DNA of 64,000 nt from Haplodiscus bocki (lineage: Eukaryota): assembly GCA_965655095.1 (NCBI GenBank), contig OZ296656.1, positions 71,238,001-71,302,000 of the forward strand, read 5' to 3'. Under the pieces are notes generated by a model. That model had not been told where the DNA came from. It saw nothing but the letters and a program-made list of their open reading frames with translations, and did no database searches. The position numbers and the translations under genes were made by a program. Positions 4,433 through 57,672 of this stretch are shown here, in pieces; position 1 is the stretch's first letter; each line of letters opens with the position of its first letter.

Positions 4433-4603
4433 ACACTTGGAACTAAGCTCGGCACGCAACCAAGTTCTTAAGATTCCTTGAATTTCTCTGTCAACTTAGA
4501 TAACTGTAAAGTTTTTTTGATTAATGATTCTTTATTTTGTTGTGTGTGTGTGTTTTCGCCTTGATTGATATGTAGAATACTTTAATGAATAAATTCTTTA
4601 AAA

Positions 4604-6111
4604 GCCTAACTGTTGATAACGCCTTTTGATTGTGATAGCTATTACTCGCTTGAATCCTTGGCTCGCTATTAATTGGCCGTCTCCTGTTGACTCAGGATTC
4701 TTGTCAATTTTTACCACATACTATTGTGGTGAAATTATCATTTGGAAATTGGAATTTATTCAAGTCTTCATTACCTTGCTTACGACCTGTGCTGGAATTG
4801 TGCTACAACTGAATTCTTTTCAGTTCTAGTTCAACCTCTATTACATAATGGAACAACCAACGGCCCTGCTCGACAACGTCTCTTCTTCTTCTTTAGCAAC
4901 CGGCAACCCGACAACGGCTAGACCATGTTATCTAACTCCTGAACAACGCGTACAATTCTACAACCAAGCACCATCAATGAACAACCAAGAATCTCCACTG
5001 CAAAACCAAGATGCACCACCTCAATCTATCACTAAATACATTGACCAAGCACTTCAGCAACCAAGTTACTCTGGAATTGCAACTGATAACCAAGCACCTC
5101 AACAACCAAGTTACTCTGGAATTGCATGCAACAACATTCCTCAACCAAGAACCATGAACATTCTCAAACTCAAAATTATCCCACCATTCAACAAAGACCA
5201 CTTCGCAACCAAGGAAACCTTCGAAACAGCCTCCAACCAATGTATCGCTGCTATTCTACGTCAATTCTCGCCGCAACTAAGAACGAAACTAACTATCTCA
5301 AAAACCTTCACCATGGTCGGAACACGCAGACTTCATACTTTCCACATTGTTGCTCCAATCGAGGCCACTGAAGTATTTTCTCGACTCCAGTCAAGTGGAA
5401 TTGAGATGCTAGGAAGAACAGTCATTCCCCAGGGTGACTCTTTTGAACGCTACATCCCAGGAATCTATCCGAAACACACTCCGGTACGAATCCTGCAACT
5501 TCCCTCACTGTGCCACGAACAAGAGATCCACGATATTCTTGATTTACCAGAATCCACTGAAATTACGTCTCTACGCCACAATACCGATGTGATCGACGGC
5601 ATGAATTTCTACAATGGGCGTGCATCAGCCATGGTTCGGGTAGTTTCAAAAGAACATGAGCAGATGCTACGTGAATGGTCGATCCGAAGTCATGAAAATG
5701 GGACACATGAATGGAACGGCATTCCAATTTATGCATTTATACCCTCACTTCATCACTGTCAACATTGTAAGGTTCACCGTCGGCCCTTCCACGGCCATGA
5801 CATTGCCTGGTGTCGATATGCAAAGGCCGATGAGCAACTAAGAACAATTCCTACTCCCAACAATGGCAACCAAGAGATCTCTGCTCAACCAAGTAACAAC
5901 GTCTCAACTTCTGAACCCACCGCTCAAACTGATGAAACTAATGTATCGAATGTGACTCCTGACGAAACCTCTGATGAAACTGACAACCAAGAAGATACTG
6001 AAACAAACAGCGAAGAAGATGACTCACAACGCCCATGGCAGACTGCACCCACACACTCAACCAAGACTCTATCTGCAACTAAGACCCAATCGCAACCATC
6101 TCCGTTTGACA
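4604..6111 (+). mobile_element. E2: family A element, 3'-truncated within ORF1
   Basis: Near-identical to 17343-18851. ORF1 from 4848 breaks at TTTGACA (6111) and joins the next unit's motif directly. Confidence 0.92.
5044..5135 (+). repeat. Two-copy 45-bp in-frame repeat in E2 ORF1 (QA.QQPSYSGIA); also in E5
   Basis: Visible in both DNA and translation. Confidence 0.85.
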
Positions 6112-6290
6112 GCCTAATTGTTGTGATAGCTCTTCTTGCTTGAATCTGAACTCTATTGCTGCTGATATTACAGCCTTTGTTGTGATTAATCATCGCTTGT
6201 AAAAGCGTTGTATTCACGTTACCTTGTACGTTACCTTGTGTAACCTTGTGTATTTACCTTGCCTATTTATTGTTAATATGACATTACATT

Positions 6291-10851: not shown

Positions 10852-11006
10852 GTTTTTGAAGTCTATTTTGATATTCTGTTGATAAAATTGATTTATATTT
10901 GATTTCTTTGTGTTTTGATTTGATTTGATTCATTGATTTGTTTATTTTTATTTTTCTTTTCCATGATACTTGTAGATATTTAGTTGTAATAATACATTAT
11001 TCAAAA

Positions 11007-11440
11007 GCCTAATTGTTGTGATATCGCTTACGATTGCTTGCTTGCCTTGCTTGAATCTAGCTGATTGCGCGCATAGATTGGCTGTCTCCTGTTGATTGAG
11101 GATTCGTTACGTCTTGTGGTTCTCATTTCATCACATTTTTTGGGGTGAAAAACATTACTTCGAAATCTTCTTGCTTATTAATTCTTATTCATTGTTACAT
11201 TTCGCTTTGCTTTACATCGCTGCTTGTTCTGAACGGTCAACGCAGTGTCCTCACCCTGTGAATACTGAACTTGATTCAGTTTCAGCACCACAATTCAACA
11301 ATGGAACGACCACAGGCCCTGACCGACAATGTTTCTCTCTGTCCTCCACTGAATATTGGCCCTTCCGAAATGGCACGACAATGTCAAATGAAACTTGAAC
11401 AACAAAGAATACAATTCTACAAGAACCAAGGAACTTCATC
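11007..11440 (+). mobile_element. E4: family A 5' fragment (5' UTR and first codons of ORF1), 3'-truncated
   Basis: Starts with the junction motif; near-identical to 43522-~43946; homology stops near 11440. Confidence 0.88.
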
Positions 11441-14400
11441 ATAAAAAGAATCAAGAAAGAAAAAAGTTAAGCCACCGCCACTCAATTAAACAAAAACACC
11501 TACACACACGTCACACAAAGAACGAAACGTTTATCGTGATAAGCTGCCATTGCCAGAATTTCACAAAGCCGGAAAGGAGCTACAGTTGAACTTTAATGCC
11601 ATACGTAGTGTTCAGAAAAACCAATAGACAGGGTCATTCTGCAAAAAACTCATTTAGGGAATTGACATTGAAATCTTTTCCTGATAACGTACGAAGAGAT
11701 TGCTGCCTCGCAGTAGAAATCTCGAAACTGCTAATAGTGAAAATCGATGCTAGCATTCTGGACAAAAACTTTCGAGAAACCCTTTATTTGGAAAACATTA
11801 CTGAAAGGCAATCAAAGCTTCGAAACTTCAACTAAAACATTTGTTTCAAAAATGAAGTATATCCCTTGCTTCCATCACACCTTCCCAACTGCGACTACTA
11901 GGAAAAAAACTTGATAGATTGCTATAAAGACAATAGTGTTCCAGAAAAACTCTTTTTTTTTCTTCCATTAAAGTAGCTGAAAACAACTGAATTTTGGAAA
12001 TTAAATTGAAAAATATCCGCAAAATGCGTGGAACAGGGCGGACTTGACGAAACTTCCTGAAGTAAATACTATCTATTCCAGAAGACATATGCCAGACAAT
12101 CAAAGATCTTCGGGTAAATCACATTTGAAAACATCATTCTAAAAATAATCTAAATTTCGATGTTTAGATTGAAACACTTGACCAAAACATTAGAGAGTAG
12201 TGGCTCTCCACAGACTTTTGTAACTCCAAGTAGCAAAATGGAAAGTTCAAGATTTCAACCGAAGTAAGTTAATTGAAAAGATTCAGTCTGAAAAAAACTC
12301 AGGTAACCTAAAGAATCCTTCCCAGCGTGTTCAACTTTTATTTCGACTGTTCCTTCTCATTTTGTACATCTACAAGACGGAAAAATGATATTTTCGAGAG
12401 ACCACTGATTTTCACCACCGCAACAACTCTCCCTCCTACGCTGTAAAAAAAAACAAGCAAATTTTAACTAAATTGAGTTGCTAACGTGCAGACAAAACAG
12501 GAACGTCATTCGTACTAAAGTGGCGTTGCCAGTTTAAACACAGAGGCGAATGGGAGCTTGAAAAAAGTGGCAGCAAGACAAGCTACGATTGAACCTCAAT
12601 CCGCTCAATTATGTTCCGGAAAATCGCCTTCAAGAACATCAAATTGATAATTATTCAAAATTCGAGGTTTATATAATTTTTCCACATAATAGGCTTTAGG
12701 CAGACTTCCTCAATGCAAATAGGATGCCTCAGCAAAAGAAAGTTGCAATGGAACCAACAGTGTTCACAGAAAGACATTCAAAAGATTAATTCTGCTAGAA
12801 GGTAATTTGAGAAAACTTCAAATTGAAACGTTCGGATGATGTCCGATAATGGACACCGTATTGAAACAAATAGCATTTTGGGGCCTTCCTCAATTCGAAA
12901 CGCTGCTTCAGTTCCTAGACGGCCAGTAGGGGTACCTAACTAGTCTGCATCGAGGAAAATATCCGTGGGGTTGAATTGCTCCGCTTTGAAGTCTAGATTA
13001 GCCATTTACCCTAAACGCGATTGATGTTTCAATTGTTGCATTGTTATGACCAATATTCAATATTGGGGAGCAGAATTCAACTTTTGTCTGAATCCATCTT
13101 TTGGATGCGGCTGCTAACCATGGGCGCTTGGCTTGACTATTTTTCAAAGACATTTGATGCGGCTTCAGTTCGATCGCGGCCATAAATCAATTAAACACGT
13201 ATCCCATCACTCGTTTCGAACAGACTTTCCAAACTGCCAGGACTTGGTTCAAAATTGGTACATTGCAATTAGGCCAATAGTGTTGAAGAAAGTACCTAAG
13301 AAATCATTCTACTAAAAATATATATCTAAAACACGACCTTTGAATTGAACTATTTTAAGTTTAATGTATGAAAAAGTAGATCTCTTGCTCTCTGCCGTTA
13401 TTCCAAAGTGCCCGTAGCTGTATTAAAAATGTATGCTTGCAATCTGATCAACAGGTAATGAGAAAAATGCCGTCTGAAAAAAATTTGGTCAAATGAATTA
13501 CAAGTCATTCGAGCAGTCCCATCTTCAATTTTGTCTTTTCTCGTCCTATCATCTACTTTCGTGAAAAGGCTTAAAAGACATTTTGTTAGATTTTGAATGC
13601 TTTGACCATCGCGGTGATATTCCAACCATCCTTCTAAGCACTAAGCGGAACAAGCCATCATTAATTAAGGCGAGTTGTTAACGTGCAGATACGAAAATTT
13701 CGATCGTAATAAGCTGCCGTTGCATTAACACTAAGACATTACAGGGCCATTAATTTTGCATATTAATATTTTCGTGACGGTGCTCGTCCAGTGGTTTCAA
13801 CGGCTGTCACCCACTTGTAGGTCCAAGGCGACCAACCCGTTTCTGCACGGAGATCCCAAGGTGCCAGCATTAACGTTGCAAAGCTTGTCATGGTTATGAT
13901 CCAACTAAGACGGTCTTCGCTGCTCAAACCATGGCGTAGTACATACACCTCAAGAGGCCATCTTTATAATTCCAGAAATGAAGCCAGACTAAATGTTAAT
14001 GAATTCGTGCTTATATATACGATGTTTCTGTTCTCTGGATTACTGTTTCCAGACTCTTATCAATGGTATATCGAGAGTTGGTTACGGTCTGGCAACTCGC
14101 CGATTTTCTTCCCAGCGAAAACTCAAAAAAACATGGTCCATTTTCTATCAAGTTTCCGTATTTTAGTACAGCACACAATGAAGCTGGTTCAATTTTGCGG
14201 GCAGGCTGACACGAAATTTATGCAAATGCCAGCTTTGATTCCAATTTATGACAACAATGAACTTCAAACAAAAATGGAAAGTTGAAATATTTTCATCAGA
14301 ATTTCATATTTTCATTGAAACGATCAGAGCGTCATTAAAGAAACTATAGCCGACAACAAGCCGGCAACAGCGCGCAAGGTACAAACCAAAATACTCGAAA

Positions 14401-15978
14401 GACGAGACGACCCTCTGATGTTCTGTGAATGCAGGATACCAATGAGGATTATCACATTTTTTCTCGTAAACTTTTACCTCTAATGGTGTTTCTCAGAACA
14501 TGAGCGTTCAATCGACACCAAAATGGTAAAAAGAGCCACTTCAAACTTTTATCTAATTTTGTTGAGATTTTTCAGAATTCCCATTGACGATGGGTTTTTA
14601 TTCGAATTTGTAGACTATAACAAATGGAAACTTTCTCAAAATTGCATGTTTCAGTCAGTGTGTTGCACCTAATAGCGGAAGAGGCTGGCTAAGCAGAAGC
14701 GACGCGAATTCGTTAATGAAGCGTCTCAAAAGACGCCACTGAGCGGGTGCTCGGGTGTTTTTTTCTGCCTTTCTTGAAAACCTAACTTAAAATCTGTCAA
14801 GACACCAAATAAACCAATTCGATCTTTTTGTGTTGCCCAAAGCCGATAGCACTTTCAGGTGATAAAATATACCATTCTGAATATAGCAAACGCGTTTTAA
14901 GTCGCATTTTTCTCTGTTTCTGCAATAAAAAAGTCATGCCCTCGATAGGTCAATGATACCGCAAAAGTTCCATTCGAGGCGTACCGTTTCGCCCCGACGC
15001 AAATAGAATTCACTGAGAAACGAGGTTATATAAAATTTTTGCTGGAAAACGACAAAGACAAAAGGAGTAGTTTGACGTCTTGGAAAATTTTCACAAGGAA
15101 ATTCTTCATAAACAACTGCAGGACCTTTCAAATGATCAAAAAGCAATTCTGCACGTCTAGGCGAACATTTTGAAGGCTTCCATTTTTTTGGCCAGCACGA
15201 CAAAATTTTCGGGCAGTGTCGGAAATTTTATTGTCTCCAGCCAACTTTTTTGGAAACCAAACTAATGCCTAGAAAAAGGCGCCTTGTTGCTTGTAGCCCA
15301 GTGTGTGTTGAAACATGCAGTGAGCGTGTAGAGACGTTGAAGTCTAGAATAAAGATTTGGCCCAATCGCGGAGAAAAATCTACAGGTTTGAAAATTTTGC
15401 TTATGCTTCATATGATCCAAAATAATAATCTAGCAAAAACACAATTTGCTTGCTACCGGAATACTTTTTGCCTGAGTTGTTATTGAAGAGCTTAAGGAAG
15501 ACGATTGCGATTTCATGTAGCCAAGTAGTTAACGTCTCTCGCTCGGCTGGGGCTCAGTCTCGTGTCACACGTCACCATTTTGTTAGAAATTGTTAATGCA
15601 TTGAAATGTTCAGAAGTGATCGCCGATTCCAGGTAGGAAACTCAGTTCTCCAGTAACTTTTGTCCATGAAATGCTTAAAGAAACACATTATTCTCAAAAC
15701 TAGTACCAAAAATTTGCCATACAACCTATTTAAAGCGTGAAAGAGTACTTTTCAAGCAAATCAGCGATTATTAGAACAGTAGACTCCGGTCGATTGGAAT
15801 CCGAATTACTCGGATATCCGTTTAATTCGCATTTGATTTTGAGCCCATTGTGAAAGAAATCATGTATTAAGATCTGGTTAATTCGTTTGGCCAGTTATTT
15901 GTACAAGGTTATCCAGAGCCAAGCACTACGAATTAGCCGGATTCCAATATAGAAAGGGATATCCAATTTAATTTCGTT

Positions 15979-16016
15979 ATCTGACGGTTCAACTTATATA
16001 AGTTGAGCCGTCAGAT
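15979..16016. repeat. 38-bp near-perfect palindrome ATCTGACGGTTCAACTTAT/ATAAGTTGAGCCGTCAGAT
   Basis: The 19-bp arms are reverse complements with one G-T mismatch. Confidence 0.9.
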
Positions 16017-17342
16017 GAAGAAAATAAATTGAGTCAGGTAGTTCCCATTCTAGTCAGGAAGAAAAGAATGAATAAGAATAATGAATTGAGAGATGAAGAA
16101 AAGAAAATTTTTCAATATAATTTGAACGAATTCAGTTAGACTATTGTGCACTTTCCCATGCGACAGAAAACATATATTGATAAAACTTTCAAATACATTA
16201 AAAGTAAGAATTCATTTGATATAATTGTGACAAGACGAAACATCATGAGGAGGGAATGAAACTCTTTGATGTAGATTTTTCGATTTACAAGCAGATACTA
16301 GTTTTCTTCTCCTACTCACGTGAGACAGCACAACGTACAATAGCAAACTGGTTCCAAATACAATATGACAGCACTTTTGATACCCAAAACAGCTCGAAAA
16401 TGATTCTATGGAAAAAGTAAATAATACGTCGCAGATTACATCAGCCGCTAAATATTTCTTTCGAGTTTACTTTTGGTAGCTTTATGCCGAACGATACCTT
16501 CAACACCGCCGTTCTGACGCCGATATTTAGCGAAGTGGTAACACTCGATGTCAATTACTGATTTTTCAGATGGTGAGCCGCAGTTTCGAACACAATGAGC
16601 AAATACAAAGATGCCGCATTTTCCAAGATTAGGCTAGATGAAGTTATGAAACTCGCTAAAACGCGCATTTCCGCGGAAACAATGATTGAAATTCCGATTA
16701 CATGCACCAAAGTTACGCGCATACACAGAGCAACTATTAGCAACTATGCATAAAACCCTCCGATAAACTTCATTCAAAAGTTAAATTTTAGCCAAGTATT
16801 GCTCGCATTCACATTGAATTTGCAAATATCTCGGAAAATTAAAAAAAAAAAAAACGTTGCGCGATAGATGGGGGTACATCTATCAAATCGTTATCTAATT
16901 ACTTGCACAGCTAGCTGATCAAGGATACGTGCCAGTAGACGGCTACTTTTGACCGTTTCAAAATGATCACTACATCAATTCTCAACCGACGGAATCGCAT
17001 TTTTCGAAAAATCTGTTCCCAGCGATGCCAACCTGCAGGCAAAACCTTTTCCATATCAAACTTTTATGATATCATGATATAACTTTTCATTGCAAACAAT
17101 TTTTCGTAGACATGCTAATCATATCTGAGCCGTCACTAATTTATGCATTTCACGGTGTACTACCATTGCATAGTCCAACTTACTATATGCCCTCCAAAGC
17201 ACTTTTTTTTCTGTTAAGAAATGCATAAAAAACACTAAATAACAAAATGTGTCTTAACTCAGTCTCCAAGTTGTGCAAGCTGTTATTTGTAGCTTAAGTA
17301 CTTTTCAAGGAACGCGATCCAAGCAACTATAGTTCGCTTTTA

Positions 17343-17359
17343 GCCTAATTGTTGTGATA
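17343..17359 (+). other. Conserved unit-start motif GCCTAATTGTTGTGATA (representative copy; also at 4604, 6112, 11007, 23168, 28204, 33195, 38442, 43522, 45288, 50345, 52333, 57673, 59331, 61318)
   Basis: Read directly at all 15 unit starts, always preceded by A. Confidence 0.95.
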
Positions 17360-22978: not shown

Positions 22979-23167
22979 CAATAGTAATCTAAGTTTTAAT
23001 CATAACTACGTTTGAATTATAACTAAGCTTTGAGCATGATCAAGTTTGAACTGCCACTATGATACCTTTGATATACATTTCTGGATTTCTGATTTCTGAT
23101 AGATAACTAATCATTTGTCTCACTAATCATTTGTATTAAGATACTTGAATGAATTAATTCTTTAAAA

Positions 23168-26100: not shown

Positions 26101-28203
26101 AAAAAGCTCAGAAGGTTTGAACTCGGCGAAATATACAAAAACAATGATGATAACCCCATTACAGAAATCGAAGTTGAAAGAGCAATAATGAAACTCAACA
26201 GAAGTGCACCAGGCTCAGATGGCCTCACCTCTGACCTTTACAAAACCCAAAAAGAATTCTTTGTTCCGCTATTAACTAAGCCTTTCAACGACATATATGA
26301 AAAGTCATATGTTCCTCCTTCCTTTGAACAAGCCATCATAAAAGTAAAACCAAAAAAACCAAACGTATATGATATTGACAACTTCCGGCCAATCAGTCTT
26401 ATAAATACGGATCAAAAAATCTTATCACACATTATAGCCTTCAGATTAAAGAAAGTGCTTGATGTATTGATTGGGCCACATCAAACAGCCCACCTTACAA
26501 ACAGAAACATTAACATTTCATTATTGAAACTTCAAACTTTTGCCTCTGAACTGTCAAAGAGAGACGGTATTGTTGCCTTAGATTTCAATAAAGCATTTGA
26601 TAAAGTAGATCGAAAATATATGATGGAGCTCATACGTCGCCTCCCGATTGACTGTCAAACCAAAAACATAATACAAAAAATGTATGAAAACACGAGTGCA
26701 TTAGTAAATGTAGGTGTTTTTTCGGCACCCTTCAAAACTGAAACAGGAATCCGCCAAGGTTGTCCAATGTCAGCTCTGGTGTTTAACCTTGCCATTGAAC
26801 CATTGTTACAAAGACTTCAAAGATCAAAACTCATCAAATCATCACAAGAAACCAAATCTATTGCCTTTGCAGATGATATCTCCATTTGCATGAACTTGCA
26901 CTCCATTCGAAACCTCATGACTTCTCCGAATAATTTTGCAAAAATCTCCAGTTTGACAGTCAATATCAACGAAAGCAAGGTCCTAACACAAGGGAAAACC
27001 TATAAACAGGAAAAATGGAAACTTGAGAAAGTATCAAAAGCAAAAATCCTCGGGTTAAATAATAACATTGGTGGCAAAATCGATGCCGAGACCAAAAGCG
27101 ATCTAATCAACACAGCAAGAAAAGCATCTCTTTATGTAGGGCCTACTGTATCTCTTTATGCTCGTGCAAAAAACATAGACATTTATCCTTCCAAAACTTA
27201 TATACTTTCTCAGGCACTATACAGGGATAAAAACATTATTGAGGAAACTCAATTGTCAAATGATCAATCAACTATGGCTAGAGAAGAAACATAACGTGAA
27301 CCAAGAAATTGTTAATACTCCAATCGAAGATGGAGGGATAGGCTTGAAAAACATCGAGAAATGTGTATTAACAGCCAAAATAATGAACCTCAAATTATTA
27401 GCCTTTAATCCAATGGAAAAACACTTCCTTACAAATTTCAAACAAAGCAAAGCTTTCAGTCTCCTGGAGAAAGATCTAAAAGATTCCGGTATTGAAATTC
27501 TGGAACTCTCCGAACAAAAACTGAATATTCAATACTTCTTCCAAAACATTGAAATCACAACATTGACAACCTCAAGAGAACATTATGAGTTCCTTGTAAA
27601 ATCCCTTATCACGGTACCATGTTTTAAACACATCAACATGTCAGCAATGGAATTCCAAATATATCCCAACATAATTTTTGGCTTCATAACTCGAATATGG
27701 AAAAACAGGAGACTGAAATCGTTCGATAAAAACATTTTATATAACTTCCTAATGAACGACTACCTCGATAAACAAGAGAAATGGTTGAAAAACTTAGTGC
27801 CTCACCCTCTCTGTTTTGCATGTGAGGAGTCATTTGAAACTTGGCATCACCTAATGTTTGAATGCCCGAAACTAGCGCCAACCATAAAAGCTCTCAATAT
27901 CAAACACTGGAGTGACGTCTTCCAAGATAAAACATACGTAACACCAAAAGTACTAGTAGCAATAATACTATCCTCCTGGACTGAAAGCCCAGGAAACTAC
28001 CTAAACTTTTTTCTTAAAAAAACAACGCTATCATATGAGTTACATACCTCGTAGGTTTTTGAAGTCTATTTTCATATTCGTTTGATAAAATTGATTTATA
28101 TTTGATTTCTTTGTGTTTTGATTTGATTTGATTCATTGATTTGTTTGATTTTATTTTCCATGATACTTGTAAATATTTAGTTGTAATAATACATTCTTCA
28201 AAA
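23168..28203 (+). mobile_element. E6: family B (subfamily B2) full-length element
   Basis: Motif at 23168; ORF1 23417-24762 (one frameshift near 23955); ORF2 24779-28054 (frameshifts); ends AATACATTCTTCAAAA. Confidence 0.93.
24779..28054 (+). pseudogene. E6 ORF2 EN-RT, disrupted
   Basis: INVRGL, LQET, GDFN, RIDY, SDH, LDFNKAFD, GIRQGCPMS, FADD spread across three ORF fragments. Confidence 0.92.
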
Positions 28204-28482
28204 GCCTAATTGTTGTGATATCGCTAACGATAGAGATAGCTCTTTGTGCTTGAATCACTAGCTTATCGTGACCATATTGGACAGGCTTCGCTCTGTTGGT
28301 CACCATTTCATCACTTTTTTGTGGTGCAAATCATTACTTCGAAATCGAAATCTTCTTGGTTATTCATTCTTCATTGTATTATTTCGCTTTGATTTACTTC
28401 GCTGCTTGTTCTGCAAGGCCAACGCAGTGTTCTCACGCTGTGAAGACTGAACTTGCTTCAGTGTTCATCTTCAAACGTGACC

Positions 28483-33059: not shown

Positions 33060-33750
33060 ACATGTTAAACTCAGCCTTCATTGTAACCAAGTTTCGACGT
33101 GTAAATGTACAATTTCTGATGTCTGATTTCCAATTCCTGATTTACATAAATTTGCATTTTGATAGCGATACTTTAAGGAATTAATTCTTTAAAAGCCTAA
33201 TTGTTGTGATATTGCGTTGTTGTGATATTAATTGTTGTGATAATACCAGTGAGGAAATTTCCGAGGTAGGTCATTTTCAAGCTGTGCTTAGTTAATCTCT
33301 TGGCTTTAAGAGTTGCTAGCAAGCTCACTTGGCTGAAACACAACGTTTCCCTTGAATTCCGTGTCGTGTGGACTCGCAAGCCTCGAGCTTGTGCTACGGC
33401 GCTCGCTGGCGTAAACCCTTGCAGGAGGGTGATAAGCAGGAGTGTTTCCACCCAATCGTGAGCTGTTCGGCAGGCCCTGAGACACCTGACCAAGAGAACA
33501 GCACGGTTGAGATAGAGTTGGCAGGTCCCAACCAGTAGTCATCCAAAAGCTGGTTGGAAGAACAACGATTTCTTGTTAATCGTGTCACCCTAAACTTTAC
33601 TTAGGGTCCCTTATCCCTTTCAGGAGTTTTCCCCTTTCTTCAAATTCTTCCCCATTAAAACTGTTGCGGAAACTCCAGCTAGCGAAAGTTACTGGTTTTT
33701 CTTTTTTTTACTTTCTTATCGACTTTGTTATCAATCAACTTAACTTTAAA

Positions 33751-38267: not shown

Positions 38268-38731
38268 AAAGTTCACACAGAAAACACTTATGTGCTACAA
38301 TGTAATATTTGATGCGGTAAATTTGGCCCAAGGGCGTGTACAATCCTTATAATTTTGTGTAACTTGTGATGAAAGTTCTGATAACTATGTAAAGCCCTGA
38401 ATGAGTTAGAATAGAAGAAATTATCAATTAATTCTTTAGAAGCCTAATTGTTGATATTGCGTTTAGCTATCAAAACCTTTGCTTTGTTTAACGTAATTCT
38501 TGCAAAAATTTGCAGTTCTTGCAAATTTTAGAGCAAAATCGAGATCACGAACGAACTTGTTCTCAAGTTTTGAGTTAAGTTTCGTTATTTCTTTCGCTTT
38601 CATTATTTGAAATTCATTATGCCTAACCAAAATTTTCTCAAACTCCAATTTCAAAAAAGAATTTTCAAAGTTATAACCAGCATCGAGCCTCATACGTCAG
38701 CAATAACGACAGAAGCAACGGAGAAAATAAC

Positions 38732-43366: not shown

Positions 43367-43521
43367 GTTTTTGAAGTCTATTTTGATATTCTGTTGATAA
43401 AATTGATTTATATTTGATTTCTTTGTGTTTTGATTTGATTTGATTCATTGATTTGTTTATTTTTATTTTTGTTTTCCATGATACTTGTAGATATTTAGTT
43501 GTAATAATACATTATTCAAAA

Positions 43522-45287
43522 GCCTAATTGTTGTGATATCGCTTACGATTGCTTGCTTGAATCTAGCTGATTGCGCGCATAGATTGGCTGTCTCCTGTTG
43601 ATTGAGGATTCGTTACGTCTTGTGGTTCTCATTTCATCACATTTTTTGGGGTGAAAAACATTACTTCGAAATCTTCTTGCTTATTAATTCTTATTCATTG
43701 TTACATTTCGCTTTGCTTTACATCGCTGCTTGTTCTGAACGGTCAACGCAGTGTCCTCACCCTGTGAATACTGAACTTGATTCAGTTTCAGCACCACAAT
43801 TCAACAATGGAACGACCACAGGCCCTGACCGACAATGTTTCTCTCTGTCCTCCACTGAATATTGGCCCTTCCGAAATGGCACGACAATGTCAAATGAAAC
43901 TTGAACAACAAAGAATACAATTCTACAATAACCAAGGAACTTTATCTTGCAACCAAGAAACGAACAGCAACATCACCCAAGCACTTCTGCACCCAAGTTA
44001 CTCTGGCTTTACTTCTAACAATACTCCTCCACCAAGAACCATGAACATCAGAAACTCAAGATTATTCCACCGTTTAACAAAGACCACTTCGCAACCAAGG
44101 AAACCTTCGAAACAGCTTCCAATCAATGTAATTCTGCTATTCTACGTCAATTCTCGCCGCAACTACGAACCAAGCTAACACTGTCAAAAACTTTCACTAT
44201 GTTCGGAACCCGAAGGTTACATAACTTTCACCTCGTGGGTTCAAATGAAGCCTCTGATGTTTTCACTCGACTCCAGTCAACTGGGATTGAAATGTTGGGA
44301 AGGACGGTTATTCCACAGAGTGACTCTTTCGAGCGTTTCATCCCTGGTATCTACCCGAAGCATGTTCCTGTTCGTATCCTTCAACTACCATCACTCTGTC
44401 AAGACAAGAACTGCAAGACATTCTAGACGTACCTGACTCAACCCAAATTACTTCTATTCGACACGACACCGAGGAGATTGATGGCATGCACTTCTACAAT
44501 GGACGGGCTTCAGCCATGATTCGTGTGGTCTCTCACGAACACGAAGAGATGCTGCGTGAATGGTCTATTAGAAACCATGAAAACGGAACACTGACGTGGA
44601 ACGACATTCCCATCTACGCCTTCATCCCTGCTCTGCACCAGTGTCACCATTGCAAAGAGCACAGACGGCCCTTCCATGGGCACGATGTGGCATGGTGTCG
44701 GTATGCCAGAGCAGAAGAACAACAAAGAACAATAACTCCTTCAACTAATTGCAACCAAGAAGTCTCCGTTCCACCAAGCAACCAAGCCACAACACTAGAT
44801 GACACGACTCCAACTACTGACGAAACAAATGCAATGAACGTGAGTCAAGATGAAACTTCCGACAGCAACCAAGATAACACTGACAACCAAGTAGACATTG
44901 ACACAGATAACGAAGATGATGATGATCCTCAACGCCCATGGCAAACCGCACCAACACACCCAAGAAAAACAGCATCTGCAACCAAGTCTCAATCTCAAGA
45001 AAACCAAGAGGAAAGCTGACCACAACAAAGCACGACTGTTCATGGCGAAGAATCTTGCGCTTCAGACGCCTGCAACCAAGAAGAAGAAACCAACCAAATG
45101 ATCTTTTTCTTGCACGCAACTAAGATTTCTAACATAACTAATAACTGCTAAATATTAATCTATGAAATTGTGAAACTAAACTTTGATTGTAACTACGTTT
45201 TGTACAATATTTCTGATTTCTGATGTCTTATTTCTGATTTCTGATAACTCTCATTTTGTTAAAGATACTTTAATGAATTCTTTTAAA
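43522..45287 (+). mobile_element. E10: family A internally deleted element (frameshifted ORF1, ORF2 almost entirely lost, 3' UTR kept)
   Basis: ORF1 43807-45101, then ~35 nt matching early ORF2 (AACTAAGATTTCTAACATAACTAATAAC) fused to the ORF2 end (CTAAATATTAA) and an A-type 3' UTR. Confidence 0.88.
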
Positions 45288-48200: not shown

Positions 48201-50344
48201 CGCAAAGCAGAAAAAGTGCAATTTATTTCTTGATAAATTTTTTCAAAAGAATGAGAAAAACCTTAAAAAGTTAGAAAGTGAACAAACATTATTAGAAAAT
48301 GATGAGGAAAACCCCATCTCAAAATTTGAAGTGGAACGGGCAATTATGAAACTAAATAGTCGAAGTGCCCCAGGTGCAGATGGTCTAACATCTGACCTAT
48401 ACAAAAGCCAAAAAGAATTTTTTGTTCCGTTACTAACCAAACTTTTCAATGATATCCATAAAACGAATAATGTTCTTCCTTCATTTGAATTAGCCGTAAT
48501 AAAACTAATAGAAAAGAAACACAATGTATATGACATAGGTAACTTCAGACCAATTAGTCTCATTAATACAGACCAAAAAGTCCTGTCTCATGTAATAGCT
48601 CATAGACTAAAAAGTGTATTAGATGTGTTAATTGGCCCACATCAAACTGCACATCTATCAAACAGAAACATCAACTCTTCCCTTCTAAAACTTCAAACTT
48701 TTGCAACTGGAATGTCAAAAAGAAAAGGAATAATAGCATTAGACTTCAATAAAGTTTTTGATAAAGTGAATCGAAAGTATATGATGGAATTGATCAATCG
48801 ACTCCCCATAGACTGTCAAACTAAAAACATCAGAAGAAAAATGTATGAAAATACAGTTGCGACAATAAACATAAAAGGTATCTTCTCCAAATCCTTCAAA
48901 ACCGAAACTGGAGTAAGACAAGGTTGTCCTATGTCAGCTCTTATGTTTAACCTTGCTATTGAACCTCTTATCCAAACAATTGAACAATCCAAACTAATCA
49001 AATCATCACAAAAAGTAAAGTCAATAGCCTTTGCAGATGATATCTCAATCTGCATGAATCTTCAGTCCATAGGTAGCCTCACAGGCATTCTAAACAGATT
49101 TGCATAGATCTCAGGTTTGACAGTCAATGTTGAAAAATGTACTCACGGAAGGGAAGACCTATGAACAAGAAAAATGGAAGCTAGAAAAGGTCTCACGGAC
49201 AAAAATCTTAGGAATTAATATCAACGTAAAAGGAACACTTGACCAAGAAAACAAAAGCGATCTAATCCAAACAGCTAAAAAAGCAGCACTCTATGTGAGA
49301 CCAGCCGTATCTCTCCGGGCCAGAGCGAAAAACATTGAAACTTTCGTAATGCCAAAATTAATTTACTTTCTCAGGCATTACTCAAAAGCTAAAACACTAA
49401 CAAGAAAGTTAAACTCAAAACTAATAAATCATTTATGGCTGAATCAAAAACACAACGTAAATCAAGAAATAGTAAACACGCCTGAAAAGGACGGTGGAGT
49501 TGGACTAAAAAATCTTGAAAAATGCATTCTGACAGCCAAAGTAATGAATTTGAGAACACTAGCTTTCGGTTCCAAGGACAAACATTTTAATCCAACATAA
49601 AAGCAAAGCAAAGCGTTCAACAATCTGAAAAATGACATGCACAAAGATGGAATCGAAATATTGGAACTAACTCCTGATAAACTAACTATTCAATACTTTT
49701 TAAAAAGCCTTGAAATCAAAAATCATACCTCATAGAAACAACTATATGAATTCTTGGTAAAATCCGTTATAACAATCCCTTGTTTCAAGAATATTAACAT
49801 CTCGGCGATGAAACTTCACATGTCTCCAAACATCATATTTGAATTCCTAGCTAAACTATGGAAAAACCGCCGGTTAAAATCCTTTGATAAAAATATCCTA
49901 TATAATTTTCTCATGAATGCATATCTTGAAAAACAAGAAAAGTGGCTAAAAAATCTAGTACCACACCCGCTCTGCTTTGCTTGCGAAGAAACATTTGAAA
50001 CTTGGAACCACCTCATGTTTGAATGTCCACAGCTAGCCCTAATAAGAAGCACACTAAAAATCCAAACGTGGAAAGACATATTACTAGACAAAACTTGCCT
50101 GTCAGCCAAACTGCTGGTGGCAATAATACTGTCCTCATGGATAGGAACACCAGGTAAATACTTAAACTTTTTCACACAAAAACTAAAAAACAACAATACA
50201 ACATACCAGTTACATACCTCTTAGCCTCACTTGTCACTTTATATTAATTAAATATTAATAGAACTTTTGTTACAGTTTTATTACTGGTTTATTCTATTTG
50301 ATGTCTCTGTAGATTTGTAACTTTTTCAAATAAATTCTTCAAAA
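45288..50344 (+). mobile_element. E11: family B (subfamily B3) full-length element
   Basis: Motif variant GCCTAATTGTTGTGCTA; ORF1 45448-46945 (broken near 45837); ORF2 46935-50224; ends AATAAATTCTTCAAAA. Confidence 0.93.
46935..50224 (+). pseudogene. E11 ORF2 EN-RT, disrupted
   Basis: LNVRGL, SDH, APGADG, RPISLINTDQK, GVRQGCPMS, FADD, CFAC finger; several stops and frameshifts. Confidence 0.92.
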
Positions 50345-50455
50345 GCCTAATTGTTGTGATACTGCCTCGTTACTCTGCTGGACGAGAGAGTTTATTTACA
50401 CAGCGCCATATCACTAATCTTGCAGTGAAATCTGCAAAATTTGAGCAAGTGCAAG

Positions 50456-51926
50456 ATGACTAATCTGAACACGAACGAGCTTGATAATAAAAGTTACAAA
50501 AATGTTCTTGATTCCTCTTCGAATTCGACCTCAAATTCTGAAAATTTGCCAATTGTCATTAACTTTGCTTTACCGCTGACAGTGGAAATTCTTAAGAACT
50601 ACAAATTGCTTGATAAAATCTTTGTTGAAGCTGTTATTGCTGTAAAAAAAAACAATTAAACTCCAATGAAATTACCATCTTCAAAAGTACAATTTTGCGA
50701 AACAAAGGCAATTTGAAATGCATTACCGTTATCATTCCTGCCAAGCTTGAAAATGCAGCTACTTCACTTATTTATGATGGCATTACAATTCGTGAACGAC
50801 AAATACGGCCTTATTCTGTTCAACACTCCAACCCAAACAACAGTGCCTATCCACAAAAAGATTACCGATTTCATTCCGAAACGTTCCTCACTTCTTGAAT
50901 GACAACGATATTTTGCAAAACTGTGGTCTTCAAAGCTTCACATTTGGCAGCAAGATTATTCACCAACAACGGAAACTCTCTGATGGCGGCCTGTTTTTCA
51001 CTGGGGAAGCGAGAACAACAGTCTTGATCAACAATGAAGATGAGGAAAGTTTACTTCAGAACTGGGCCAACTCAGCATATGACAAAATCTTCCTTTGTAG
51101 TGGCGTTTACTTCAAGTGTTGCTGTATTCCACTCATCCAATGCCCTCTATGCGCTAGTGACAACCTACCCAGTGCACATCATCACTCAAGATGCCCAAAA
51201 CAACCACCAGAAGAAAGCCAAATGAGAACTGATGAACAAAGTCCAAACGAGAAAGTATCAACAGACTGTGTTATGGGAACTTCAGAAACAGTGTCAATGC
51301 ACAAGGAACGTGAAATTTCAGCCTCTGAAGATGAAGAACCAATCTCCAAAGCAGGCCGATGAAGCTGCTGAAACAGAGACAAGTGACAGTGATGAGGAGC
51401 TATCAACAGCAGAACAAAGTGATGATCTCGCAGAAAAAGATGTAACTCCCACTCCAGAACCCAAACCAGAGCAAAAGACAACCCATTCAACCACTGCACT
51501 TCCCGCAAGATCTGAATGGACCAGTGAACGAGGTTATCCTTATAAGCCAGCTGCAGAACAGAAGTATCCATTCTTTTTAGAAGAGAGTCAGAACAAAATT
51601 TTAACACCCGAAATCATTTTCAAACAAATTTCTTCTATGAAAGAATATTTGAATAAAACTTGTCAAACCTCTGGAACCATCAATCTTTTAGATGAAGATA
51701 AAGAAGTTTCAAATTAGTACAGCCGCTTAAAAGATCTAAAGTTGAAGAACTTTTTAGTCAATCCAACTGGAAAGCTAATGACTCTGATGATATTTTAGCT
51801 TCACATTTTCAATTTTATACAACTATTAGGAAATTTGACCCCTTCTATGATGCGAAAACACGTCAAATTTTCACAATCAACCTGCTGAATAGAATTGTGA
51901 AAACTTTTACGCCGGTAAAACCGTGA
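50456..51926 (+). pseudogene. E12 divergent ORF1-like protein with extra C-terminal domain, frameshifted
   Basis: Stitched fragments give GITIRERQIRPY, AYP, FFTGEART, CPLC-x8-H-x4-C, acidic linker, then LVQPL..EELF..FTINLLNRIVKTFT. Confidence 0.75.
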
Positions 51927-52316
51927 AATAGTCTTTGAAATAATGTAACCAAAAGATGAAAAACTGCGAACTTTTGACTTGACAAACCATTTATTTTCTA
52001 CAAAACTTTCAATAGAAACCTACAACTTACAAGTCTTTCAAACATCCTTATTAGACCTTCTGAAGGTTCAGACTTTAATTAAACTCCAAAACCTCTGTTA
52101 GGAGTAAACCGTAACTTTGCAACATAGTTTTCCATAACTCTAGACTATATCATACCGACTTTCACCATTCACTTTATAGTATAACCAACATCCCTCCATA
52201 TGAAAGTGCTGTTTATTTCTTTGAATGGTGCTTCTTACTATATAAAACTTCCCATATTTATACTTTACCTACCTACATAAAAACTTTGATGTTACTTGTG
52301 AATTTATAGACTGCAT

Positions 52317-52332
52317 AATAAATTCTTTAAAA
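52317..52332 (+). terminator. Conserved unit-end motif AATAAATTCTTTAAAA, poly(A)-signal-like hexamer plus fixed short A run (representative copy of 13)
   Basis: Variants at 4588, 10991, 23152, 28188, 33179, 38426, 43506, 45272, 50329, 57657, 59315, 61302. Confidence 0.75.
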
Positions 52333-52518: not shown

Positions 52519-54241
52519 ATGCCATTACAAAAACATAACTTTCTCAGGAAGAACACAGGACCTCCGGTCAGATTCCCCGCATATGAACCCAAAACACCAT
52601 TTATAAGCCTAGAAGAATTCAACAAACAACAAGCACCAGAATATTCAAAAGAAAATTTCCCACAAGTCTCAACATCCAAGAATGACACTTTACAACAACC
52701 CAGAAGTAAATGGCAGACAAAAAAATTGTACATTCCAAAATTTCGAAAACGATCCGATAACGTATTCAAGCAACCAGAAAATTACCCGCAACTCAACAAC
52801 AAACAACATTGTGGCTGCTAACAGCAATGAAATGCCCATAGAACAATGTGAGAGCTCGGTGCCAAAGTACAATCAACCAGCCAATGCCCAAAATACTGAA
52901 CACTGTGAGTGTGATGAAGTAAACAGTCAACACCCAAAATCAAATTGTCACAACTCTGACATTGCTTCATCTGCCATTTCAGAGCAAGGGCATCAGCAAT
53001 CTTGCTCTTCTACTCCTGAGCAGATAACTGCAGAAACTGTTGCTCCTCCTCTCGTGGAGAAAGCTGCTGGAAATGCTCCTTCCTTCAGTGATAAAGTGAA
53101 ACAGACAAATAGTTACAAAGAGTACAGAAGATAACGTATCCTGCGGATGAAGGTGGTTCCACCCTTCCGAAGGGAACACTTCCTGGATAGACAAAAAATG
53201 GAATCTGACGTGAATGCTGCAATTAGAGAAATCCTCTGCATATTCCATCCAAAGTTCAGACCAATGGTCACCATTTCACGTACTAATTTAACTCAACTAA
53301 ATCGGAACATCCAGATACTAATGGTAACGGCACCCGAAGAAGCAGAGGAAGACCTAGCTAGAGCGAAGTTAAATGGAATTCAGATAATGGGGAAGACGGT
53401 GTTTCCGACAGGAGAAGAATTCTGGACATTCTTGCCTTCAGAATTCCCAAAGAGAGCATTGCTGCGTGTCAATAATCTCCCAATACTTTGCACTGACGAA
53501 GAGTTAGAAGAGCTCATGGAGTTGCCAGCGGACATAAAACTTACAGGTGATCTCCTACGGGAATCAGAAGAGACCGAACTGGGCAGACTGTTTACAGGAC
53601 GGGCAATGGTTCCTATTATCATACCATCAAAAAAACACGAGAACTTAGTTAAACAATGGTCAATACGCAAGAACTCAGAGAATATTACCATCTGGAACGA
53701 GGTTCCAATTTATATGAGTGTGCCCAGCCTGCATAAATGCAGGTTATGCGAACAAGAGGGCAGGAGACAAGTGATTGGCCATGATGAAAAATGGTGCCGA
53801 ATCGTCCGCCAGACAACGAAACCCCTGGAAGAAGAAGCTCAAACTCATGAAAGCGTGGAAAATGAAGTGCAAATGGTGCCTCAAAACGAACAAACCAAAG
53901 AAAGTGAGATGCAACAGAACAGTACACCTGCAGACGACTATCACAATGTCTCTCATACCCCGGCCTCCGATGATGACAATGACGAAACAGTAGCAACTAA
54001 TCCAAATAATTCAGAAGATGACGTTGTCTCTCATACCTCTTCCTCCGATGATGACAATAATGAAACAGTAGCAACTAATCAAAACAGCGACCATGATGGA
54101 AGGAAAAGAAACTGGCAGGAAGTGAAAAAGAAGAAAAGAAAGAGAAGTAATAAGTCAACAAAATCATTGAACAGTGGCAAAGCAACAAATTCAACAGAAT
54201 ACCCGGTGAGGAAAAGTCTGAACTTAAACTCAAATGGCTAG
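52519..54241 (+). pseudogene. E13 ORF1, disrupted upstream of the conserved core (53147-54241 open)
   Basis: N-terminus FPAYEPKTPFISLEEFNKQ aligns with E11 FPPYEPETPFMSLEDFNKQ; core MKVVPPFRREHF...CRLC-x10-H-x4-C. Confidence 0.82.
53947..54080 (+). repeat. Two-copy 78-bp in-frame repeat in E13 ORF1 (VSHT..SDDDN.ETVATN); also at ~62932-63065
   Basis: Visible in both DNA and translation. Confidence 0.85.
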
Positions 54242-57200
54242 TTTCTCCTTCTTGCAGCCTGTAGACTGCTTTTCTTGTAATATAAGGGGTCTGAAAAATC
54301 CGGAACGTTTAGTAGAAATTTGTGACATTGTTAAAAACAAAAGTAAAAGTAAAAATAACATAATAACCATACAGGAAACAAAAATACAAAATCTAAAGGA
54401 GGAACATAAAAGAGTCTTGAAAAATTTTAAACTTACTTATGAGATTGTACCTGCCAGGGGAACCGCTGGAGGTCTTTTAACCCTGTTTCCAGAATCACTA
54501 AACGTAAAACCCGTTATAAAAACTGATAATGTGTTAGCTCTTGCTCTGAATCAAAATGGTCCAATAATTTGTAATGTTTATATCAACCCAAAAGATTACC
54601 ATATGAAGGCCTTCGAAATTGCTTGTGAGGACCTTCGTGAAATATCGGATAATGGAATTCTCTTTATGGGTGACTTCAATGCCATCGAACCCAATCAACA
54701 CTACGATAAAGAAAAAATGTTCCCAAAAAACAATGATATCAGAATTACCAGATATCTCCGAATTTCTCGATTTCTAAACTTTTTTAATGCTTTTGACCTA
54801 GGAAAAACCCTAAGTATGATGGAAGCCACTCATTTTGATAAAAGAACAAGAGCTAACACAAGAATTGACTACTTCTTTGGAAACATCAATGTTCAAAATT
54901 CGAAAATGTTTCTACACTCAACCTCTTTCTCCGATCATAAATGCCTTCATCTTACCTATTTTATGAATGAAAATCAAATCGGAAATGGTTCGTGGAAGTT
55001 AAACAATGAGATTTTGCTGAAGGAAGCTGAAATAAAGGAGATAATACTGAACTGTTTTGAAAAAACCTCAGATATGGCGAGAAAATATGATTTATATAAG
55101 TCAAAACTTAGAGACCTCTTGCGTCTGCTATGTATTCGAAATGCAAAAGAAGAGAAATTTTTGGGTTTAAAAGTGGAGAGAGAGGTTGAGTTTTCAACTA
55201 AAAACCTGCAATCCAAAAAAGTTTGTTCGAAAAGTGATCTGGAAAATCATGAAGAAAAAGTAGAAAAACTGAAAACTTTTCAGGCTACCAGAGCAAAAGT
55301 GATTCTTCATTCTATAAAAAATTTTTATATGGATGTTAATGAAGGTGATCCAAAATCAACAAAATCAACGTTGAGAATTTTTGCAGAAAAACGCGAAATA
55401 AGAAAAGTCATCAACTCAGAAGGTGTGCCCATTGAAGATGAAAACGACATTCTTGATGAATTTGCCAGATACTTTGAAAAATGCTACAAACGGCCAAACG
55501 ATAGCAAAAAAATGGATCAAAAACTGTATGTAAGGAAGAAACACCTTCACAAATTTTTTAAAAAGAACAGAACGATACTTGAAGACTATAAGCTTCAGAA
55601 TGAAATCCAAAATGATGATGACAAGCCAATAACAGAATTTGAAGTCGAAAAAGCAGTTATGAAGCTGAATAGCAAAAGTGCTCCTGGATCGGATGGTCTA
55701 ACCTCTGACCTATATAAAACCCAAAAAGAAGTGTTTATACCCATTTTGACGGAATTATTTAATAAGATCCATGAGACTCAATATGTTCCTCCTTCTTTTA
55801 AACAAGCGATCATAAAACTGATACCAAAAAAGCCCAACAATGTAAACATAGAAAATTTCCGTCCAATCAGTCTGATCAACACTGATCAGAAAATTCTATC
55901 ACACATCATAGCAGAAAGGCTGCGCAAGGTCCTAAATGTGTTAATTGGGAGGCATCAAACTGCTCACTTGACAAACAGGAACATTAATACATCATTAATG
56001 AAACTACAAAAGTTCGCAACAGAAATGTCAAAAAGAGAAGGTATAGTAGCACTTGATTTTAATAAAGCTTTTGACAAAGTAAATAGGGAATACTTAATGG
56101 AGATGATAGGACGCCTTCCTTTAGATCGTCAAACAAAAAATATCATTAACAAGACTTATGAGGAGACAATTGCTTTGATAAATATCAGAGGCTCTTTCTC
56201 CCTTCCTTTCAAAACTGAAACCGGTGTTCGACAAGGCTGTCCCATGTCAGCACTAATGCTCAATCTTGCAATCGAACCGCTACTACAACGTATTCAAAAC
56301 ACCAACTTTATCAAATCCTCTCAAGAAATTAAATCGATAGCCTTCGCCGATGATATCTCTATATGTATGTACACAAGCTCGATCGGAAATCTCTTTGCAA
56401 TTCTCAAAGACTTTGCGGATATGTCTGATTTAACAGTTAATATCGACAAAAGTAAAACGCTCACAGCTGGCAAAATGTATAAAGAGGAAAAATGGAAGCT
56501 ACAAAAAGTAAAACGAGCAAAAATACTAGGTTTATATATAAATGTTGGCGGAAAACTAGATAATGAAACAAAGAATGAAATGATGAGTACAGCTTTGAAA
56601 ACTTCCCAGTTCATGGGACCCACACTTTCTTTGCATGCAAGAGCAAAAAACATTGAGACCTTTATCGTTCCCAAACTCATATATTCTCTGAGGCACTATC
56701 CAAAATCCAAATCGTTCATGAAAAAACTGAATGCGGTAATCATTAATCAATTATGGTTAGACAAAAAACACAATGTTAATCAAGAAATCGTCAACACACC
56801 ACATCAACAAGGGGGTATAGGTTTGAGAAACCTACAAAAATTAATATTTACAGCCAAGTTGATGGATTTAAAAAACTTAGCGTTTTGTGATCTTGAGAAA
56901 TCCTTTGTTCCCACGTACAAAAACTCAAAAGCTTTCAGTAATCTGTTGAATGATCTAAAACACGATGGTATTGAAATATTAGAGTTCGACATTAGAAGTG
57001 TATCCTTTAATTTCTTCTTCCAAAGCTTTGAAGTGACCGAAAAAACAACCTTCAAAGAAATATATAAATTCTTGATAGAATCAATCATCGCAATTACATG
57101 TTTCAAAAATATTAACATGACTGCAATGAAACTCAATATTTCTCCCAATATCATAATGGACTTCATTAAAAAGCTTTGGAAGAACAAGAGACTAAAATCC

Positions 57201-57506: not shown

Positions 57507-57672
57507 GACAACGATACTAAGTTGCATCTTCCATTACAGACCCCTAAACTTTTCATCCTTTATATTTTTACATCCTTTACTTGACATTTATTTACGTTCT
57601 CATTTATTTATTTACTTTCAAATTGTTTGATTACTTGTAGATTCAGATTTGGTTATAATAAATTCTTTAAAA

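Follow-up and report, generated by a model that had tools for sequence, protein, structure and literature searches.

Organisation of the locus

The window, the whole 64,000-nucleotide stretch of Haplodiscus bocki DNA analysed here, holds two head-to-tail arrays of non-LTR retrotransposons, and every long open reading frame (ORF) lies on the + strand. Copies of the 17-mer GCCTAATTGTTGTGATA and its variants served as boundaries for dividing it into 16 units, U0-U15, which were assigned to families by comparison of both DNA and protein. Family A consists of U0, U4 and U6 along with the partial units U1, U3 and U9, and family B of U2, U5 and U8; the remaining groups are U10, the pair U12/U15, U7, which is a separate lineage, and the short ORF1-only units U11, U14 and U13. 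U11-U12 and U14-U15 form a segmental duplication in which U14 copies U11, and U8 is a 96.6% copy of U5. U1 is 3'-truncated, being broken off inside ORF1, and U9 is an internally deleted family A unit. Annealing through microhomology was considered for the U1 break and ruled out, the parent sequence (U4, position 18852) continuing with CAACC and not GCC.

The 17-mer itself is identical to nt 1-17 of the spliced leader (SL) of Symsagittifera roscoffensis, published as GCCTAATTGTTGTGATAAACTTATTAAATAGA (PMC9911081, against which the match was checked). In addition to the copy at 17343, exact copies are found at 6112, 11007, 23168, 28204, 33195, 43522, 50345, 52333 and 61318, and variants at 4604, 38442, 45288, 57673 and 59331. 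Since the remainder of the SL, AACTTATTAAATAGA, is missing from the window even when up to two mismatches are allowed, its native context was taken from other loci. The target copy at the 5' end of the elements is less exact than the 3' junction, because units that are otherwise near-identical (U1/U4 and U11/U14) differ in their 17-mers. At the unit starts at 4604-4620, 57673-57686 and 59331-59347 the variants read GCCTAACTGTTGATA, GCCTTGTTGTGATA and GCCCCATTGTTGTGATA, respectively. The 5' end of U7 (33195-33245) is made of partial tandem repeats of the 17-mer, GCCTAATTGTTGTGATA, TTGC, GTTGTTGTGATA and TTAATTGTTGTGATA, which may be a trace of untidy 5' joining.

The only intact ORF2 in the window belongs to U12 (1090 aa, 54234-57506). 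Pfam recognises in it an N-terminal APE endonuclease (EN; Exo_endo_phos(_2)) followed by an RVT_1 reverse transcriptase (RT), and its best PDB match is human L1 ORF2p (residues 12-872, E 2e-54), R2 reaching only 4e-30. Judged by their proteins, the SL-inserting elements are placed in the L1 group of non-LTR retrotransposons (APE plus RT), since the U12 ORF2 matches human L1 ORF2p best over both EN and RT. The identity of the U12 ORF2 to its neighbours is around 55% for family B and U10, around 39% for U7 and around 30-35% for family A. The ORF1 proteins gave no Pfam matches.

The short units U11 (50345-52332, about 2 kb), U14 (59331-61317) and U13 (57673-59330, 1.66 kb) lie in the range 1.7-2 kb and contain only a partly broken ORF1-like gene, ORF2 being absent, with complete SL flanks and the terminal box described below. 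Their layout resembles that of gag-only partners such as HeT-A. A relative of U11, 70-74% identical, is present at another locus (L006:7394-8377). Three further observations concern the rest of the window: U3 is represented by only 434 nt of family A 5' UTR after the 17-mer; about 5.7 kb (11441-17150) between this truncated unit and the native SL flank at 17343 is without long ORFs; and both families A and B have a short recurrent 5'-UTR motif, GCTTGAATC, lying 25-45 nt past the 17-mer (e.g. 4648-4656, 6138-6146, 11049-11057 and 28248-28256).

A conserved box at the element ends

Thirteen of the units end in the same 16-nt sequence, AAT[A/T/G][A/C]A-TT[C/A]TT[T/C]-AAAA, with two variants in the last four bases (AGAA and TAAA), and all 13 boxes directly precede the 17-mer GCCTAATTGTTGTGATA or a variant of it. 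The degenerate pattern AATRMATTMTTYAAAA, with no more than one mismatch allowed, has 12 matches in the window, each of which is on the + strand and coincides exactly with a unit end, while shuffling leads to an expectation of 0.37 matches (largest value 3). The 13th box, AATTAATTCTTTAGAA, is the AGAA variant of U7. The boxes and associated features are as follows.

4588-4603, + strand: terminal box of U0 (family A), AATAAATTCTTTAAAA; pattern match at unit end
10991-11006, + strand: terminal box of U2 (family B), AATACATTATTCAAAA; pattern match at unit end
17327-17342, + strand: native SL-gene upstream flank CTATAGTTCGCTTTTA, no box; head of array 2, the same flank heading the array at locus L004
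17343-17359, + strand: 17-mer GCCTAATTGTTGTGATA, SL nt 1-17, target-site duplication; match to published SL
23152-23167, + strand: terminal box of U4 (family A, head of array 2), AATTAATTCTTTAAAA; pattern match at unit end
28188-28203, + strand: terminal box of U5 (family B), AATACATTCTTCAAAA; pattern match at unit end
33179-33194, + strand: terminal box of U6 (family A), AATTAATTCTTTAAAA; pattern match at unit end
38426-38441, + strand: terminal box of U7 (separate lineage), AATTAATTCTTTAGAA; AGAA ending as in its L004 relative
43506-43521, + strand: terminal box of U8 (family B, 96.6% copy of U5), AATACATTATTCAAAA; pattern match at unit end
45272-45287, + strand: terminal box of U9 (internally deleted family A), AATGAATTCTTTTAAA; pattern match at unit end
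50329-50344, + strand: terminal box of U10, AATAAATTCTTCAAAA; pattern match at unit end
52317-52332, + strand: terminal box of U11 (~2 kb, ORF1 only); pattern match at unit end
57629-57636, + strand: example of the second, upstream box, GAT(A/T)ACTT or TACTT; motif count, 8/11 units
57657-57672, + strand: terminal box of U12 (intact ORF2); pattern match at unit end
59315-59330, + strand: terminal box of U13 (1.66 kb, ORF1 only); pattern match at unit end
61302-61317, + strand: terminal box of U14 (duplicate of U11); unit end at which read contigs converge

Since U14 duplicates U11 and U8 copies U5, the 13 ends reduce to 11 that are non-redundant. When these are anchored at their 3' ends, the information per column rises from at most 1.3 bits upstream to about 2 bits throughout positions -16 to -1, and a MAFFT alignment agrees. 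Within family A, the alignment of members with ~80% overall identity breaks down ~180 nt from the end, yet these members retain the box. Read contigs from four DNA-type runs of a single study, in which rare variants may be hidden, were laid against the window: between 5 and 11 contigs per run, differing upstream, converge exactly at 61302, the first base of the U14 box, and diverge again past the 17-mer, after 61334.

With 10 ends from other loci (see below) added to the 11 from the window, there are 21 independent ends, in which 9 of the 16 box positions, including A-16, T-14, A-11, T-9, T-7, T-6, A-2 and A-1, are invariant. The ends span ORF2 identities down to 30-40%, the UTR upstream of the box being unconserved. 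The hexamer that opens the box is fixed in register in 21/21 ends, always 10 (or 9) nt from the junction, and takes the form ATTGAA or AATTAA in 5/21; the other half, TT(C)TT(T/C)-RRAA, is at least as conserved. Two lineages with an intact ORF2 carry ATTGAA yet keep TT(C)TTT-RRAA in register. A second and weaker box, TACTT or GAT(A/T)ACTT, lies 22-41 nt before the end of 8/11 non-redundant units with variable spacing, the enrichment of TACTT having a binomial P of about 1e-8.

The observation of the first-pass annotation is confirmed by these figures, namely a 16-nt terminus common to 13 units, 3' UTRs that otherwise largely cannot be aligned between families, and variants that follow subfamily, AATACA being used throughout family B. 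It had also noted the absence of the box at two positions, and both are explained: the unit before 6112 is 3'-truncated and position 17343 is preceded by the native flank CTATAGTTCGCTTTTA. Its description of a fixed A4 in place of poly(A) needs amending in one respect. There is indeed no poly(A), the terminal A run being 2-4 in the 21 independent ends and never longer than 4, but the last four bases are really [A/G/T][A/G]AA. Long poly(A) or unrelated termini in other copies, which would have told against the idea, are not seen in the 10 further ends. At 57672, 59330 and 61317 the read contigs list no indel in the length of the A run.

No conserved fold accompanies the box, RNAalifold predicting 0 pairs in the last 80-97 nt, and single folds of element 3' ends are no better than those of shuffled sequences (z-scores -0.3 to +2.1).

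Single insertions at other loci

A word-based protein search with the U12 ORF2 gave 16 relatives of 34-91% identity, followed by a gap from E 1e-124 to 2e-46 for the next matches. Flanking DNA was examined for nine of these ORF2 relatives and for two metagenome contigs; because the assemblies behind these loci are few and represent the same worms or close relatives, the sample is phylogenetically narrow. In seven of the loci (L003, L005, L006, L012, L013, L014 and L015) a tandem array of SL genes is interrupted by a single element and is otherwise intact; Rfam confirms that 5S rRNA or U2 genes are linked with these SL genes. The native SL units, 905 bp long in L003 and L013 and about 1430 bp in L005, are in tandem with 5S rRNA or with U2 on the opposite strand.

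In all seven loci the native SL gene reads ...GCTTTTA/GCCTAATTGTTGTGATAAACTTATTAAATAG followed by gtaagt (here and below a slash within a sequence marks the junction or nick), and the -7 to -1 flank GCTTTTA is conserved in every type of native flank seen. The junctions are likewise uniform: at the 5' side the native flank is followed by 15-17 nt of SL and then by the element, while at the 3' side the element ends in its box, which is followed by an intact SL gene. The boxes are AATATAGTCTTTGAAA, AATAAATTATTTGAAA, AATATAGTCTTCAAAA, AATAAAGTCTTCAAAA, ATTGAATT-TTTGAAA, AATACATTCTTTAAAA and AATAAATTCTTCAAAA.

Other loci add to this picture. The array in L004 is headed by the native flank CTATAGTTCGCTTTTA, the same as that before window position 17343, and its element, a relative of U7, ends ATTGAATTCTTTAGAA, with AGAA as in U7. 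In L001 a 5'-truncated copy lies at an off-target site, GCCTTGTCTTAT, which is duplicated on both sides, and ends AATAAATT-TTTAAAA. The sequence AATAAATTCTTT is found 158 nt past the ORF2 stop in L011, from a different assembly, where neither element boundary nor target is definable, and it was excluded from the counts; nor are the 3' ends of the outgroup elements L007, L009 and L010 definable. In a distant L1-like outgroup element, L008:4690-4773 (Logan SRR12608654), the terminal AATAAAG plus A9 directly adjoins the first base of a tRNA-like gene (GCCTCGCTAGCTCAGATGG...), so that this too may be a LINE targeting the start of an RNA gene.

A relative in the U2 snRNA gene

One element of the same clade, P0010, is inside a U2 snRNA gene, confirmed by Rfam, in locus L002 (L002:1-9225, ENA ERZ25074608 ctg180868). 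Its 5' junction reads ...CCTTTTGGCTAAG and then the element, and its 3' junction AATAAATTATTTAAA/GGCTAAGATCATG, with a target-site duplication (TSD) GGCTAAG; the site is U2 nt 18/19. The native U2 flank at this site, GCCTTTT/GGCTAAG, is unlike the SL flank, yet the box is the same. The nick sites themselves are alike, SL TTTTA/GCCTAA and U2 CTTTT/GGCTAA.

In a maximum-likelihood tree of ORF2, the 17 acoel sequences form one clade (support 100/100), the outgroups being anonymous and long-branched and the midpoint root serving for drawing only. P0010 is sister to P0014 (94/76), within a group with P0016 (97/94), and is nested among the SL-targeting elements. This nesting of the U2 lineage, together with the likeness of the nick sites, suggests on phylogenetic grounds that a target switch between SL and U2 genes took place within one clade. 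The box would then be older than the switch.

The same U2 array in L002 has been struck by a second LINE, unrelated to the first, which joins U2 at about nt 38; it has no box and so serves as a negative control. It has a C-terminal PD...D-V-K motif, and its sole PDB hits, both weak, are to the C-termini of R2; from this motif and these hits it is provisionally identified as a Utopia-like LINE of the restriction-like endonuclease type.

Ownership of the box and position of the nick

The box is part of the element to its left and not of the target, as had been claimed at first pass: its variants follow the family of the element rather than the neighbouring sequence, native flanks are without it, and in the seven single insertions it separates the element from an SL gene that is itself intact. 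Among the variants, AATACA is found in every member of family B, and AGAA in both U7 and its L004 relative. Resemblance of the box to the native upstream flank, considered as possible mimicry, was rejected, only 4-6/16 positions matching in register and a shared CTTT lying out of register.

The last four bases of the box, AAAA, GAAA or AGAA, adjoin native genes whose own flank ends TTTA, and bases which are family-specific beside such flanks must therefore have been copied from RNA. It follows that the bottom strand is nicked between A(-1) and G(+1) and that the RT starts at the last A of the box.

This result bears on a proposal of the first-pass annotation that is not supported, in which every inserted element would prepare the next cleavage site, its box recreating an L1-type TT/AAAA site or serving as the left half of the target. 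The bottom strand of the box, TTTT/AAAG, does resemble the L1 EN consensus, and in the long pile-ups all but two of the used 17-mers are preceded by a box. Both nick positions, though, yield identical array products, so pile-ups cannot speak for it. Elements at native sites end GAAA, AAAA or AGAA, with the nick at A/G four bases downstream of TT/AAAA and the last four bases derived from the element. SL genes that have no box, with flank ...GCTTTTA/GCC, have been struck repeatedly, their flanks matching the box at only 4-6/16 positions in register, and the U2 relative retains its box beside an unrelated native flank. The native single insertions thus largely refute this explanation, to which we attach a very small probability indeed.

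Function of the box

The reading that we favour, as probable if by no means secure, is that the box is a clade-wide, templated 3'-terminal recognition and start signal for target-primed reverse transcription (TPRT), ancestral to the clade and kept by purifying selection, whose hexamer may double as a poly(A) signal. In outline, the elements insert at the transcription start of SL RNA genes, one nested lineage using U2 nt 18/19 instead; the element endonuclease would nick the bottom strand of the SL gene between A(-1) and G(+1); and the RT would begin precisely on the final A of the box, with the result that poly(A) is not copied. The RT or the ribonucleoprotein (RNP) would presumably bind the box as an unstructured, single-stranded recognition-and-start signal, a 'stringent' LINE tail in the usual terminology. 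Read-through SL bases (GCCUAAUUG...) in the RNA might pair with the nicked target and so aid an exact start, as in R1Bm. The GU-rich UUGUUGUG of the SL 17-mer could allow cleavage slightly downstream, a few bases inside the target copy, in which case the RNA would retain GCCUAA... for such pairing. The box would have been inherited from the common ancestor of the clade and maintained by purifying selection, its hexamer part perhaps also serving as a poly(A) signal.

The box is seen as a linear signal because no conserved fold exists, and recognition by RT or RNP is favoured by its fixed register, by conservation of the non-hexamer half at least equal to that of the hexamer, and by the two lineages that have ATTGAA beside an intact ORF2. 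The absence of a conserved stem-loop, unlike the best-studied stringent tails, weakens this interpretation. The first-pass suggestion of a shared recognition or 3'-processing signal is plausible in that the box replaces poly(A) and is conserved across 30-40% ORF2 identity, although here we infer the function itself. Cross-family mobilisation, suggested at the same time, appears possible from the sequences, because the ORF1-only U11/U14 and U13 and the deleted U9 carry both the box and SL flanks.

The most serious alternative, which we nevertheless regard as unlikely, is that the box is only a poly(A) signal with its cleavage region, that the GU-rich UUGUUGUG of the SL is the downstream element, and that conservation reflects 3'-end formation. 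Most of the hexamers are known animal variants of the poly(A) signal (AATAAA, AATATA, AATACA and AATGAA), and a GU-rich stretch lies at +7 to +16 in both the SL 17-mer and the U2 flank, UUGUUGUG occupying +7 to +14 of the SL. Inside the elements, sense-strand AATAAA is ~2.2-fold depleted (24 observed against 53.2 +/- 6.4 expected, a count as low being reached in 0/200 shuffles); antisense TTTATT shows no such deficit (17 against 14.7). Since the hexamer is poly(A)-like and internal sense AATAAA is depleted, a purely 3'-processing role could explain part of the conservation. However, AAATAA is depleted about as much (28 against 54), so that the depletion is not signal-specific, and the poor poly(A) hexamers ATTGAA and AATTAA occur in lineages whose ORFs are intact. 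Neither a spacing fixed at exactly 10 nt nor a conserved TT(C)TT(T/C)-RRAA spacer at ~30% protein identity is required of a poly(A) signal, and tailing at the A run would predict A tracts of variable length, found in 0/21 ends. Roles in RT recognition and as a poly(A) signal can coexist.

A combination of this kind, which we put forward tentatively and with some doubt, is a split 3'-end signal in which the hexamer and spacer come from the element and the GU-rich downstream element from the SL or U2 gene. Only in the target would a proper RNA end then be formed, and the few retained target bases would pair with the nicked target and fix the RT start at the last A.

Two other explanations fare worse. 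The box might be a promoter or initiator for the next unit or for the displaced SL gene, in the manner of HeT-A, whose 3' end drives its downstream neighbour. It does lie at -16 to -1 of the SL start in head-to-tail arrays, and insertion parts the downstream SL copy from its own promoter. The box is, however, unlike both the conserved native -7 to -1 GCTTTTA and the wider native flank, its A/T-rich part at -16 to -11 is off the usual TATA position, and the same box precedes U2 nt 19, which is not a start site; we consider a promoter role very improbable. That the box has no function, being a slowly decaying ancestral remnant or a chance likeness among A/T-rich sequences, we regard as the least credible explanation of all, even though the 3' UTRs are A/T-rich and some of the copies in the window are duplicates. 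Such a view is hard to reconcile with the excess of matches over the shuffle expectation, with a sharp boundary at -16 beyond which the adjacent UTR is scrambled even between 80% identical family members, or with nine positions invariant in 21 ends across ~30% protein identity.

Comparison with known systems

The R1 clade, whose member R1Bm inserts in 28S rDNA, shares with the acoel elements an APE endonuclease, one fixed site in a multicopy RNA gene, a precise 3' junction and the lack of long poly(A). For R1Bm, PMC7265360, citing Anzai 2005, states that an accurate start requires downstream target sequence in the template RNA. The precise junctions at the acoel loci are consistent with R1Bm-like initiation, the pairing here being conjectural. 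The acoel elements differ from R1 in having an ORF2 of the L1 group, SL or U2 genes as target, and a short linear box common to many lineages.

The Tx1 clade, which includes the U2-specific Keno, offers another parallel, consisting of APE-bearing LINEs of the L1 group that are strict for small multicopy RNA genes, as is P0010 in U2. The protein search with the U12 ORF2 returned no named Tx1 sequences, the tree outgroups being anonymous, and in the literature examined we found no report of SL genes as a Tx1 target. Keno is reported to share the insertion site of Utopia (PMC4640811), whereas in the L002 array the APE element uses U2 nt 18/19 (TSD GGCTAAG) and the restriction-endonuclease LINE ~nt 38. 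Since the two L002 sites differ in this way, the U2 specificity of P0010 probably arose independently of Keno's.

Site-specific insertion into spliced-leader exons or genes is known for NeSL-1, SLACS, CZAR and CRE (PMC4640811). The SL target is common to these and the acoel elements, but the former are early-branching and use a restriction-like endonuclease while the latter have an N-terminal APE (Pfam Exo_endo_phos). A literature search gave no paper that connects non-LTR elements with the spliced leader in Symsagittifera.

Stringent LINE tails may be shared with SINE partners, as with eel UnaL2/UnaSINE1 (Kajikawa & Okada 2002, as cited in PMC4494074). As in that pair, the acoel tail is a short, conserved, non-poly(A) 3' sequence, and units without RT (U11, U13, U14 and U9) carry the same tail; unlike it, the acoel tail has no conserved stem-loop and is a 16-nt A/U-rich linear box present in deeply diverged autonomous lineages. 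With human and other mammalian L1 the acoel elements share the EN-RT architecture of ORF2p and an AATAAA-like hexamer near the 3' end. They differ in ending with no more than four A's, in a nick at A/G of GCTTTTA/GCC rather than TTTT/AA, and in specificity for one site, with a 15-17 bp TSD of SL nt 1-17.

Poly(A)-dependent priming has its textbook example in the RTs of the L1 group. Were the split signal to prove true, it would constitute a built-in check by which only correctly inserted copies are competent templates, and would mean that an L1-type RT can dispense with poly(A). A clade of the L1 group that combines a fixed, unstructured 16-nt box with a start at a single exact base would be a natural system for the choice of template and start site in TPRT, and is also relevant to the use of site-specific LINEs for targeted insertion. 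For the family itself, the presence of the same box in SL-targeting (/GCCTAA) and U2-targeting (/GGCTAA) lineages would document a switch between small-RNA-gene targets within one clade.
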